Shown piece by piece: positions 1,918 to 8,784 of a stretch of DNA of 64,000 nucleotides; within the stretch, counting starts at the first letter, position 1; each line of letters opens with the position of its first letter. Source of the stretch: Ascidiella aspersa (Eukaryota); the NCBI GenBank assembly GCA_963924565.1, contig OZ004610.1, positions 11,470,001 to 11,534,000 on the forward strand, in the 5' to 3' direction. A program made the translations under genes and the position numbers. A model generated the notes under the pieces. The model searched no databases. It was not told where the DNA came from and worked only from the letters and a program-made list of their open reading frames with translations.

Positions 1918-2606
1918 ATGTAGATTAGAATTTGACACTGGGTTTCGGTTCACATTGAATCATTTTTAAATTGTGTTGAATATTTATTTTGTTTTTTAAT
2001 TGCAAATTGATTTGCTCAAGAAAATAATTCTTAAAAAAACCTGGAAAATTTGACAAATCTGTTGCACTGCCTAAAGAATCAGGGTGCCAGAGTGCACCCA
2101 AGGTCAAAAGTGCACCCCACTTGTGTAATAAATCGGAAAATCGGGATGCATTTTTTATATTCAATATTGGACATGTTGACACTTGAACCACATTTAAAGA
2201 AATTTAATTTAAAATTAACTTCTCTAAAACCATCCAATCTTAAAAATGTTTTGGTCACATTTAGACTCTCAGCTGCAGCCACACATTTCATGGAAAATCA
2301 CTGTAAAATGAGTGAAGCCACAATTGCTTACTGCAAAACTTATTTACCACCCCATAAACTTTAGAAACCTCTTTATTACAGCTGCACAAATGTTAGCAGT
2401 ATCTTTACCACAGCCTTTTTCCTATGGTTACTCACCTATATTTAAATTTTATTTACTAAATAACCATAATTGGAACATATCTACATTTGAAAAATTTTAG
2501 TGAAATAAACCCTTTTTAATGCAACAGTAATGTGTGCTTTTAACATGTTTTCATTTAACTTGGTTAGATCTAGATGCAAGCATTCTTGAAGTGAAATTTA
2601 AGCATC

Positions 2607-4130
2607 ATGAATGGTGGAAATTCTAACTTGGAGGAAATTTGCGAAAATGTAAAAATGGGCCGTGAATATGCCTTACTTGGTAACTATGACACGGCATCAG
2701 TATACTACCAGGGTGTTCTTCAACAAGTGCACAAGCACATTGCTTCCCTGAAAGATCCCGAGACTAAAAGCATGTGGCAAAGTGTTAAACAGGACCTTGC
2801 CCATGAATTTGACCATGTCCAGGACATAACCTCAACTTTGGCAAGCTTTAAAGTTGAAGGAAGCTATTCTGCGCCTTCCCACAGACCGGGAAGAGGTGGC
2901 TACGAAGAGCCAACCCGTGACCCTGATGTATGGCCACCTCCAACTCCAGTTGATCAACCACATAAGCCATCTCCCAACTATGCAAGGCGTAATCCCCCTC
3001 GAGCTTACCCCATTAGACCAACACCCCAGCCAAGCAATGATAGGAAGGGTGGACGTGTTAACAATGCAGGCCCTGCCAACGCGAAACAAGATGACAGACC
3101 ATATCGAAGACAAGCAGATAAGGTAAAGAAAGTGGAGAAGGGCAGAGCCAATTCACCAAGAAGACAGGGTGGCAATGATGGTAAAGAAGATAAAAAATTT
3201 GACCCAACTGGATATGATAAGGATCTAGTTGAAGCACTTGAACGTGACATTGTACAAAGGAACCCAAGTGTTCACTGGACTGATATAGCTGGCTTGACCG
3301 AAGCTAAAAACCTACTTGAAGAGGCAGTAATCCTGCCTTTATTGATGCCTGATTTCTTCAAAGGTATAAGGCGTCCCTGGAAAGGTGTGCTAATGGTCGG
3401 CCCTCCGGGTACAGGTAAAACCTTGCTTGCCAAGGCTGTTGCTACTGAGTGTAAGACCACCTTTTTCAATGTTTCATCTTCAACTTTGAGTTCAAAGTAC
3501 AGGGGAGAATCTGAAAAGCTTGTCAGACTTTTGTTTGACATGGCACGGTTTTATTCACCAAGCACAATTTTCATTGATGAAATAGACTCGATTGGTAGCA
3601 AGAGAGGAACAGGAGATGAACACGAGACCAGCCGAAGAGTGAAAGCTGAGCTCCTTATTCAGATGGACGGAGTTGAAGGAGCAACAGGTGGTGATGACGC
3701 TACCAAGATGGTGATGGTTTTGGCAGCAACCAACTTTCCTTGGGACATCGATGAGGCCCTTAAGCGCAGACTGGAGAAGCGAATCTACATTCCGCTTCCA
3801 GACACCGATGGCAGGGAGTCCCTATTGAGGATAAACCTGAAAGATGTGGAAATGGCTGAAGATGTTAATCTAAAAATGATTGCAGAGAAGTTGGAGGGAT
3901 ACTCAGGAGCAGATATAACCAATGTGTGCCGAGATGCTTCTCTCATGGCAATGAGAAGAAGAATTGCTGGCCTAAAGCCTGATGAGATTAGAAATCTCAA
4001 AAAAGAGGAACTGCATCTTCCTACCACTGGCCAAGATTTCTTGCAAGCTATTAACAAAGTGTCCAAGTCGGTTTCATCGACTGATCTGGAAAAGTATGAA
4101 AAGTGGATGGGTGAATTTGGTGCAGCATAG
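2607..4130 (+). CDS. KATNA1: Katanin p60 ATPase subunit A1-like, intronless CDS, 507 aa
   Basis: N-terminal MIT-like segment ([18 protein letters not shown]), RDPDVWPPP motif, Walker A GPPGTGKT, pore loop SKYRGESEK, Walker [29 protein letters not shown]-terminal WMGEFG. Confidence 0.96.
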
Positions 4131-4504
4131 TAAACATTGCTCTGCCAACTGTGAAAAAGAATGACTGTTTGTCTTGTAAAAACAAAAACAATGAGGCCAG
4201 TTGGGTGCTCGTACAAACTGTATAAACCTATTTTTCATATTTTTAACACTGTTGTTATTTTGATTTACAACTAATTCAAGACTCTGTAAACTGGTCTAAA
4301 AATGTCTACACTTAGCCTAATTATTTCTTATTGATTACTTGTTTCAAATTTTATGTACTTATATTTTCAAAAAACACTGTTATAGGAAATAATTGGTATG
4401 TGACTGTATTTTTTGCTGTATCTTTGGTGCTCTATAGTTTTTCAGATTTGATGTGATTAGCAACATTACCATTAAACTTATCATTTTCCCTAGATGTCAT
4501 TGCA

Positions 4505-5623
4505 ATGTTAGCTGTAAGAAATCTAATCAAATGTGTAAAACCAATACAGTTGTATAGGGATTTGAGTGTTACAAGTCGGTGTTTTAACATGGATCTGACC
4601 AAGATTGTTTCAGTGCTAAATGAAATAGCACCAGTGAAGTATGCAGCAGACTGGGACAATGTAGGACTTCTACTGGAACCCTCCTCTCCATGTCAAGTGT
4701 CAAGAATAATGCTGACTAATGATCTTACAGAACCAGTACTTGAAGAATGCCTCAAAAAAGAGGTTGGCATGATTGTCTCCTACCATCCACCAATCTTCAA
4801 GTCCTATAAAAGGTTGTCTTTCTCTGATTGGAAAAGCAGGATTATTGTCAGAGCTTTAGAGAATCGCTTAGCTGTCTATTCACCACATACAGCGTGTGAC
4901 GCTGTACAAAATGGAGTAAATGACTGGCTGGCACAATGTCTTGGGGAACTGGAATTTATCAAACCTGTGGCTGCAACCGAGGCAAAACCTTTGACCACTA
5001 ATATTGTTAGTTTCAAACTTGATCTTTCTGACAAAACTGCAAAGAACTTTTTTGATTACTGTTCTCAGAATATATCAAATGTAAATGGAGATGCTTTGCC
5101 AGGTGGTTTATTTCAATGTAAATTTGAGTGCAATGATGACAATTTAAAACAAATATATTCCTATGGGGAAATGTTTTCTCAAAACCTAAAATCATGGCAA
5201 GTGACAAAACTGTCGCCAATTCAACTTCCTACGATTGGCATTGGTCGAATTTGTCGTTTACAATCTCCTGTTGCCATAATAGACTTGATTGATCAGATAA
5301 AAAATTATATTGGTATCCCCCATCTTAGACTAGCCCTTGGGAATCAACACATTCTTTCGTCAATGATTCAAACTGTAGCTCTCTGCGCTGGATCTGGTTC
5401 TTCTGTGTTAAAGGGTATTAAGGCTGATCTCTACCTGACTGGGGAAATGTCGCATCATGATGCATTGGATGCTGTCTCAAACAATGTTTCAGTCATACTT
5501 TGTGAGCACTCAAACACAGAGAGGGGCTATTTAAAAGTTTTAAAACAACAGCTGGTAGAAAAGTTATCTTGCGTTGAAATTTTAATATCAGAGATGGATA
5601 AGGACCCTTTAGTAGTTACGTAA
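4505..5623 (+). CDS. NIF3L1: NIF3-like protein 1 (DUF34/NIF3), intronless, 372 aa
   Basis: WDNVGLL, SYHPPIF, YSPHTACD, GVNDWL, VALCAGSG, LTGEMSHH, HSNTERGYL motifs. Second in-frame Met (MDL) at 4589. Confidence 0.95.
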   Translation: MLAVRNLIKCVKPIQLYRDLSVTSRCFNMDLTKIVSVLNEIAPVKYAADWDNVGLLLEPSSPCQVSRIMLTNDLTEPVLEECLKKEVGMIVSYHPPIFKSYKRLSFSDWKSRIIVRALENRLAVYSPHTACDAVQNGVNDWLAQCLGELEFIKPVAATEAKPLTTNIVSFKLDLSDKTAKNFFDYCSQNISNVNGDALPGGLFQCKFECNDDNLKQIYSYGEMFSQNLKSWQVTKLSPIQLPTIGIGRICRLQSPVAIIDLIDQIKNYIGIPHLRLALGNQHILSSMIQTVALCAGSGSSVLKGIKADLYLTGEMSHHDALDAVSNNVSVILCEHSNTERGYLKVLKQQLVEKLSCVEILISEMDKDPLVVT

Positions 5624-7563: not shown

Positions 7564-7598
7564 GGCACCTTAAACTGTATTTTTCTATTTATAGACAC

Positions 7599-8602
7599 AT
7601 GTATAAATTTATAAGCAACTCGACAAAATGTCAAATGAGAAAACAAGGTACAAGGTGAACTTTTATTTTGATTAGTTGGTATATTGTTAACACATTTCTT
7701 CACAGTAAACAGGAAGAGCAACCTGAAGTTATCTGTTATAAAAAAGAAAATCTCAATCTGTCTTACCAAGTTTTGTTTAACAAGCAAATGTCAGATGACA
7801 TTTTTTGTGAACTGGAAAAATGTGTGACATACTGCTCTGGCGATTTGGCTCGCCTTAAGGTAATTTATTCCCTAGAGTTGCGCAGAATACTTTTAAAGTA
7901 CCAATAACTTTTAAAGCGAGGTTTCTGTGGTGCTGGTCTAGAATCCTACCACGGCGTTAAAACAATTACTAAATCAACGCACAATATTAGGGTTTGGGTA
8001 CGGGTCAAGCATTATTATTTTAAAAATACTTGACTCACTCACATCCAAACGCTAACCCAAATAATGTACGTTGTGGTTGGATTCTAGACCAGTGCCGCCA
8101 CGGTTTTATGCAGATTTTTGGAAAGTGGACTGATATTCCACGGCAGCATGTTGCATATGGTGACGAAGGAATGGCATACAAATTCTCTGGCAATACAATC
8201 CCAGCAAAACCTTGGAATGCAATGCCGTGCCTAATTAAACTTAAACAAGCTGTTGAAAAGGCTGTCCCTGACATCAAATTCAATTTTGTTTTGATCAATC
8301 GTTACAGCGATGGAAGCAAGTATATGGGCGAACACCGAGATGATGAAGCAGAATTAGTTCAAGATGCGCCGATAGCATCGCTTTCTTTCGGTCAAGAGAG
8401 GGACTTTGTGTTTCGCCATAAAGACAACAGGGGCAAAAAACGGTCGAGGGATGATTTGTCCAAACTTACGGTTTCGCTGCAACACGGCAGTCTGCTGGTC
8501 ATGAAAGCACCAACAAATAAATTCTGGTACCACGCGCTTCCAAAAAGGTTAAAAGCTAAACGGCCCAGGATAAACCTAACATTTCGCGCAATGGCGCTAT
8601 AA
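7599..8602 (+). CDS. ALKBH2: DNA oxidative demethylase ALKBH2, 232 aa
   Basis: Exons 7599-7654, 7706-7859, 8114-8602 with consistent phases (2, 0). IFGKW, PRQHVAYGD, FNFVLINRY, HRDDE Fe motif, WYHALP, RINLTFR. Confidence 0.92.
7929..8096. mobile_element. Short inverted-repeat element, GGCGCTGGTCTAGAATCC family, in ALKBH2 intron 2
   Basis: Ends GGTGCTGGTCTAGAATCC and GGATTCTAGACCAGTGCC. Related copies at 45699 and 54931. Confidence 0.8.
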
Positions 8603-8784
8603 AAAAATTAAATTGCAATTTAAGCGTACAAATCAACTGCAAAAAGTTTTATTTTCGTGTGGAATTTAGTTAAACTTTGCGAATAAGTAACGCATGACCG
8701 ATGGAACCAGTGGACCAGAAGAAGTAAACATTGCGCGTAATTATTCTATGTTGTGTTACTCTTGCATGCAGGGATTGGTTAAAC

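Follow-up and report, generated by a model that had tools for sequence, protein, structure and literature searches.

A packed four-gene cluster in Ascidiella aspersa: a candidate Ciona-type operon beside a divergent pair with predicted crossed 5' ends

The subject of this study is a region (2560-8760) in a 64,000-nt window of the genome of the ascidian Ascidiella aspersa (contig OZ004610.1, positions 11,470,001 to 11,534,000; all coordinates below are those of the window). The region contains no undetermined base (N), and in it four genes are packed into 6.1 kb: katanin p60, NIF3L1 and ALKBH2 on the plus strand and, between the last two, a PIGZ-like gene on the minus strand. The cluster is best read as a compact set of ascidian housekeeping genes assembled from known elements. 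In the arrangement I favour, katanin and NIF3L1 form an operon of the type known from Ciona, and PIGZ-like and ALKBH2 are a divergent pair whose 5' ends cross, the overlap being dealt with by spliced leader (SL) trans-splicing. Taken as a whole this arrangement has about an even chance of being right, and its parts differ in strength.

An earlier prediction, made from the sequence alone, went further. It joined katanin, NIF3L1 and ALKBH2 in one trans-spliced operon wrapped around PIGZ-like, and it had PIGZ-like transcribed from about 8.7 kb, antisense through ALKBH2, so that each gene would lie inside the other's precursor. The first two genes do carry the marks of an operon. ALKBH2 does not carry those of a further cistron: its acceptor (7594) is 1971 nt from the NIF3L1 stop codon, with PIGZ-like on the opposite strand in between, and has no poly(A) signal near it. 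The other distances are short. The katanin stop codon is followed after 374 nt by the ATG of NIF3L1, the convergent stop codons of NIF3L1 and PIGZ-like are 134 nt apart, and only 35 nt (7564-7598) separate the divergent ATGs of PIGZ-like and ALKBH2.

The divergent junction and its transcripts

Both head-to-head starts are supported by ascidian orthologues, the spliced genes having been searched one exon at a time. The minus-strand ATG (CAT at 7561-7563) and the plus-strand ATG (7599-7601) lie exactly where they had been predicted. ALKBH2 has three exons and encodes 232 amino acids (aa). Its last exon matches human ALKBH2 with an E value of 5e-52, as against 1e-18 for ALKBH3 and 1e-07 for AlkB, and the oxygenase core is intact (PF13532, 115 bits); judged by its sequence, the gene is nearer ALKBH2 than either of the others. 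The closest protein matches in the cluster are ascidian (for ALKBH2, Phallusia at 71%, then Clavelina and Styela). The start has the pattern M-x-K-[FY]-[ILV]: MYKFI here, MDKFV in P0004 and MDKYL in Clavelina P0005. The PCNA-binding motif APIM, [KR]-[FYW]-[LIVA]-[LIVA]-[KR], is found at this N-terminal position of ALKBH2 (PMC6881253). I accept the ATG at 7599 because MYKFI recurs in relatives and sits at the APIM position. An ATG at 7628 (with a donor at 7647) was set aside, since it is the 7599 frame (donor 7654) that gives the conserved K-F-I motif. The ALKBH2 frame also stays open upstream to an ATG at 7458 (7458-7658, plus strand, antisense to PIGZ-like exon 1), and an unprocessed transcript could encode a 47-aa N-terminal extension.

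PIGZ-like has 560 codons in two exons and a poly(A) signal, AATAAA, at 5703-5698 on the minus strand. Its first exon begins MDIVWLKIIWLHLAALRLMLCILPQTG, almost identical to the start of a Phallusia mammillata mannosyltransferase, P0121 (MDCLWLKMIWLHLIALRFMLCILPQTG); its N-terminal region contains SENEF, where the corresponding Phallusia residues are SEREF. This Phallusia protein, at 30% identity, was the sole homologue detected among 8000 candidates scored. The match to PF03901 (GT22) is weak, 26.7 bits against a cut-off of 23.8; PDB gave no match, and exon 1 alone gave none in Pfam. PIGZ-like is fast-evolving and, to go by its sequence, possibly non-catalytic.

On the plus strand, the acceptor TTTTTCTATTTATAG has its last base at 7594, which leaves 4 nt to the ALKBH2 ATG. 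With 10 pyrimidines of 13 and YAG it is as strong as the cis acceptors with which it was compared (9/13 at 7705 and 11/13 at 7317), and its strength and place had been correctly called beforehand. The window has one equally strong site per 677 nt on each strand, and an acceptor of this strength within a few nt of an ATG modestly exceeds chance. The companion claim, that no donor lies nearby, is only roughly true: GAG/GTAAAA stands at 7493, 100 nt upstream, though comparable donors are as frequent as one per 395 nt. I rejected a 5' exon cis-spliced from 7493 as the main form, since its donor is of chance quality and the upstream open reading frame of its product runs out of frame over the ALKBH2 ATG. 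In Ciona the lengths of outrons, the 5' segments discarded in trans-splicing, peak near 100 bp with a mean of 438 bp (PMC4691747); by that measure ALKBH2 should start within PIGZ-like, at about 7100-7540. I lean toward trans-splicing of ALKBH2 at 7594, and consider it very likely that ALKBH2 primary transcripts overlap PIGZ-like exon 1.

The complement of TTTTTCTATTTATAG reads CTATAAATAG, a minus-strand TATA hexamer starting from 7593. It is one of five TATAAA in 7401-7740 (plus strand at 7409, 7602 and 7737; minus strand from 7593 and 7613), a number reached by 0.38% of 340-bp windows and by 1.45% of AT-rich ones. The plus-strand TATAAAAAAA at 7409 lies within PIGZ-like intron 1. A perfect 12-bp palindrome, TATAAATTTATA (7602-7613), makes up ALKBH2 codons 2-5 (Y-K-F-I) and offers TATA on both strands; it may be coding sequence, APIM-like site and two-way TATA element in one. 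As motifs go, these hexamers argue for local promoters lying within each other's genes. The two genes count as a bidirectional pair in the sense of head-to-head starts less than 1 kb apart. There is no shared promoter region between the transcription units, however, only 35 nt, and the TATA hexamers lie inside the partner genes.

RNA was taken from one run labelled as the same species (X5; about 6% of the run), from which 310 reads were placed on 2541-8540. The library is strand-specific: katanin and NIF3L1 have a depth of 7-20 one way and about 0 the other. Short plus-strand reads fall in all bins between 2541 and 7540, at a depth per bin of 0.24-4 beyond NIF3L1. Over 5741-7540, antisense to PIGZ-like, all nine 200-nt bins are occupied (3.26, 1.61, 4.01, 1.11, 2.68, 0.24, 1.83, 1.39 and 0.81; about 23 reads), so that, between the NIF3L1 end and the acceptor of ALKBH2, the antisense transcription foreseen by the original prediction was observed in each of them. 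The mean, 1.9, is close to the depth over the ALKBH2 exons (about 2.1), and at 7375, within PIGZ-like intron 1, the depth is 2. Katanin and NIF3L1 have a signal of about 0 on the opposite strand, which excludes strand leakage and DNA as the source of these reads; repeats are excluded by the single-copy DNA depth of the stretch and by the absence of reads with two fitting places. PIGZ-like itself has sense RNA at a depth of 1.2-8.3 over 5741-6940. A further run (X4, organism B) resembles low-coverage DNA and was not used as evidence of expression.

In two RNA reads, 6440 is joined back to 3174 across a GT. Position 6440 is just past a plus-strand AATAAA (6412) and ATTAAA (6430); an artefact of template switching, a circular RNA or a 3' end could account for the join.

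In the favoured arrangement, NIF3L1 and PIGZ-like converge, and plus-strand transcription would continue past NIF3L1, antisense through PIGZ-like. The ALKBH2 mRNA would receive its leader at 7594, and its outron, afterwards discarded, would come from plus-strand transcription that begins inside PIGZ-like. Were the TATA at 7409 to set a local start near 7440, the outron would measure about 155 nt; transcription from farther away, read-through from NIF3L1 included, may contribute as well, the two sources not being exclusive. PIGZ-like would start inside the first few hundred bases of ALKBH2, and a start within 7580-7900 is, I think, quite probable. If it lay near 7583, some 30 nt below the palindromic TATA at 7613, the leader would be about 20 nt long and free of upstream ATGs; starts up to the edge in CpG content near 7840, the farthest place to which the sequence points, could also serve. 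Because the genes are too close for separate, non-overlapping transcripts, the primary transcripts of the pair would have to overlap; the mature mRNAs need not.

The katanin-NIF3L1 boundary and the spliced leader

Between katanin and NIF3L1, ATTAAA (4471-4476) is followed 16 nt later by an acceptor AG (4492-4493) with 11 pyrimidines of 13, a strength found once per 3122 nt; an alternative acceptor ends at 4445. Plus-strand RNA drops to 2.96 in 4341-4540 and never reaches zero. Katanin and NIF3L1 would make an ordinary dicistronic operon of the Ciona type, a reading I hold with some confidence because the genes are on the same strand and both single-exon, ATTAAA stands near a rare strong acceptor, and the RNA is unbroken. 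Operons in Ciona consist of same-strand genes that abut or lie less than 100 bp apart, measured from the mRNA 3' end to the acceptor, and single-exon genes are enriched in them (38% vs 15%, and 60% of first genes; PMC1488885, PMC2760879); the inferred cut-off is 85 bp (PMC7986045). Here the stop-to-ATG gap is 374 nt, and the spacing from ATTAAA to acceptor fits an abutted boundary. The katanin mRNA would then be polyadenylated at or just before the acceptor at which I infer NIF3L1 to be trans-spliced (4493 or 4445).

The 16-nt Ciona leader (PMC1488885), taken as the query with GT after it, has 573 exact matches in the 308.6-Mb genome; the reversed control has 0-1. Many of the copies sit in 584-bp tandem arrays, and the one SL RNA gene copy inspected has the leader, a donor and, downstream, a U-rich Sm-like site. 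Since leader genes are present in hundreds of copies, trans-splicing is available in this animal, and the original prediction was right to invoke it. Hundreds of the SL RNA genes lie at G000:C3:5.22-5.45 Mb (for example L005 1380-1640, minus strand), in both orientations, with gaps of about 8 kb between arrays. The Sm motif reported for Ciona, AGCTTTGG, is not in the first 46 nt after the donor; GATTTTTGC is found about 80 nt further on.

CpG content and competing readings

CpG content separates ALKBH2 from its neighbours. The original prediction had set a CpG-poor junction against CpG-rich, promoter-like DNA at the window start and at 8290-8760. Its figures hold (3 CpG and an observed/expected ratio, o/e, of 0.29 in 7401-7800; o/e 1.35 in 8290-8760), but the supposed promoter-like flanks are the background of the window, whose 1-kb pieces have a median of 1.05, and 8290-8760 is mostly ALKBH2 coding sequence near that level. 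What is unusual is a depleted block seen at 2001-7840 (o/e 0.34), which spans katanin, NIF3L1, PIGZ-like and ALKBH2 exons 1-2. Its right edge is sharp, falling between CpGs at 7621 and 7841, and there is no depletion beyond 7840. Work cited in PMC3333190 identifies such CpG-depleted blocks as germline-methylated transcription units. Since depletion ends near 7840, the body of ALKBH2 would be a separate domain, and its last exon (o/e 0.98), lying outside the block, would over evolutionary time have been in a different state from the other three genes. The junction itself scores 0.29-0.56, unlike typical ascidian promoters.

These facts bear most directly on a true three-cistron operon, in which a promoter upstream of katanin would drive a precursor through katanin, NIF3L1 and the 1971 nt antisense to PIGZ-like, and ALKBH2 would be made mainly by SL addition at 7594. 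Much is consistent with it: the plus-strand RNA continues without a break past NIF3L1 as far as 7540, at nearly the depth of the ALKBH2 exons, no plus-strand AATAAA or ATTAAA lies between 5623 and 6412 (790 nt past the NIF3L1 stop codon), the strong acceptor before the ALKBH2 ATG is unpaired, and the junction is too CpG-poor for a typical promoter. Yet the long gap fails the Ciona definition of an operon, and the usual boundary architecture is absent, since the 240 nt before 7594 hold no plus-strand AATAAA or ATTAAA (the closest upstream ones stand at 7350 and 7210). Moreover, the ALKBH2 last exon lacks the depletion of the block holding the other genes, plus-strand depth drops about five-fold past NIF3L1, and TATA hexamers are enriched at the junction. 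I therefore find it unlikely that ALKBH2 is mainly the third cistron of the katanin operon. Slightly less likely again is the fuller version, an SL operon that holds an expressed opposite-strand gene as its 2-kb intercistronic stretch and couples the genes by transcriptional interference. Were this so, the output of ALKBH2 would depend on polymerase running antisense through PIGZ-like, and the three-cistron form would be an operon class of which no description was found in the tunicate operon papers examined.

An ordinary compact bidirectional TATA promoter would do without trans-splicing altogether. Both starts would fall within about 7560-7640, with leaders very short or slightly overlapping, and the apparent acceptor would be no more than the complement of the TATA hexamer CTATAAATAG. 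The two-way palindrome and the density of TATAAA suit this proposal, but distance counts against it: a plus-strand start about 30 nt past the TATA at 7602 falls downstream of the conserved ATG at 7599, and a minus-strand start about 30 nt past that at 7593 hits the PIGZ-like ATG itself. Plus-strand RNA also lies well upstream, over 6941-7540, and the Ciona operon literature puts the trans-spliced share of Ciona genes at about half or more. I rate this reading improbable. Reciprocal deep nesting, with PIGZ-like starting at about 8.7 kb and running antisense through the whole of ALKBH2, fares far worse. Gene-body CpG depletion in invertebrates usually begins some way downstream of the start, so that PIGZ-like could conceivably start to the right of 7840; the CpG ratio at 8290-8760 and one minus-strand read in 8341-8540 lie on the same side. 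However, minus-strand RNA over 7541-8540 is nearly absent (0, 0.04, 0.38 within a repeat, 0 and 0.75), 8290-8602 is ALKBH2 coding sequence at background CpG, minus-strand AATAAA at 8653, 7869 and 7667 lie on the path, and there is no strong minus-strand acceptor between 7564 and 7732 for a far-upstream exon (the nearest are at 7733 and 7812). A start of PIGZ-like near 8.7 kb is very hard to credit, and so is the nesting built on it.

Several observations count against the crossed arrangement of PIGZ-like and ALKBH2. TATA hexamers are partly to be expected in DNA of 32% GC. The RNA is very shallow, with zero reads over ALKBH2 exon 1 (7622-7694), no joints listed at introns at this depth, and no leader-bearing read at the acceptors among the best-supported loose read ends, beyond which there were 53 more. 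Plus-strand reads at 6941-7400 precede the TATA at 7409, so some transcription starts farther off, which leans toward read-through. Sense RNA of PIGZ-like is nearly nil over the 5' third of the gene (6941-7563; 0.2, 0, 0) and so stops short of the proposed start. This 5' gap occurs despite the lack of 3' bias in katanin, and an internal start, a shorter isoform or sampling could explain it.

The setting of the cluster and comparison with known systems

The features of the region are collected in Table 1. Mobile DNA lies on both sides of the cluster: upstream, inverted repeats recognised by eye as resembling miniature inverted-repeat transposable elements (MITEs) and, ahead of the window, a gag-like open reading frame of 1325 codons together with a fragmented reverse-transcriptase element; downstream, a MITE at 8774-9134 with 27-nt inverted ends. 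The MITE within ALKBH2 intron 2 is highly repeated (DNA word depths of 2418 and 3912, vs 56 and 110 for single-copy DNA). The 1325-codon frame, a retroelement with a gag-like start 10.8 to 6.8 kb before the window (L007/L008), is strongly CpG-depleted (o/e 0.16-0.41), which is unusual where transposons are reported to be unmethylated; no such depletion is seen in its reverse-transcriptase neighbour (0.73-1.04), which lies 6.6 to 3.5 kb ahead of the window. In the stretch separating the stop codons of NIF3L1 and PIGZ-like, all four RNA reads and a DNA run (X2) have a 5-nt insertion, TGCCT, at 5661 relative to the window.

Table 1. Features of the four-gene region, in window coordinates.
Feature	Position	Strand	Remarks
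CpG-depleted block	2001-7840		70 CpG, o/e 0.34; window median 1.05
Katanin p60 coding sequence, single exon, 507 aa	2607-4130	+	MIT, AAA, lid and Vps4_C domains; plus-strand RNA depth 7-17
Katanin 3' untranslated region and NIF3L1 boundary	4131-4504	+	ATTAAA, acceptors, RNA depth
NIF3L1 coding sequence, single exon, 372 aa	4505-5623	+	PF01784, E 6e-67; RNA depth 6-20
PIGZ-like (GT22) exon 2, including stop codon 5760-5758	5758-7316	-	PF03901, 26.7 bits
PIGZ-like intron 1	7317-7439	-	GT 7439-7438, AG 7318-7317
PIGZ-like exon 1, coding part, 41 codons + 1 nt, ATG 7563	7440-7563	-	N-terminus matches Phallusia P0121
Spacer between the two ATGs, 35 nt	7564-7598		Plus-strand acceptor and minus-strand TATA hexamer
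ALKBH2 exon 1, coding part, MYKFISNSTKCQMRKQGT, donor AAG/GTGAAC	7599-7654	+	N-terminal motif shared with relatives
ALKBH2 exon 2	7706-7859	+	Aligns to the region before the catalytic core of P0001 and P0005
MITE, 25-nt inverted ends, inside ALKBH2 intron 2	7933-8092		DNA word depth
ALKBH2 last exon, 2OG-Fe(II) oxygenase core	8114-8602	+	CpG o/e 0.98; ATTAAA at 8607

The operon, the outron and the overlapping divergent pair are each already a known kind, and the locus leaves knowledge of ascidian gene expression unchanged. If the crossed starts are real, it offers a clean case of trans-splicing letting coding starts pack 35 bp apart, the overlapping 5' RNA being discarded, and it would be suited to asking whether read-through from an upstream operon feeds a distant acceptor in a chordate relative. 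The nematode and flatworm operon literature examined makes no statement on opposite-strand genes within operons, and the Oikopleura paper on cap analysis of gene expression does not mention bidirectional promoters.

The SL-resolved operons of Ciona intestinalis (Satou et al. 2006, 2008) are matched here by the identical 16-nt leader, by the same-strand, single-exon katanin and NIF3L1, and by a poly(A) signal followed by a strong acceptor beside the downstream ATG. ALKBH2 differs in its distance from NIF3L1, with a whole opposite-strand gene between, and both SL addition and poly(A) sites at this locus are predicted from sequence. Monocistronic SL trans-spliced genes with outrons (Ciona TSS-seq, PMC4691747) likewise have an unpaired acceptor a few nt before the ATG and discard an outron of about 100-500 nt, but the predicted outron of ALKBH2 would run antisense through its neighbour's first exon. 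The pair also resembles divergent, 5'-overlapping natural antisense genes in its close ATGs and in the promoter-like hexamers inside the partner gene; unlike them, it could be left by trans-splicing with mature mRNAs that do not overlap. The hybrid operons of Caenorhabditis elegans, a class of which no description was found for ascidians in the operon papers examined, have long spacers and internal promoters. They resemble the present case in that a downstream gene draws on its own promoter as well as on read-through from upstream, and they differ in belonging to another phylum, one with a specialised SL2.

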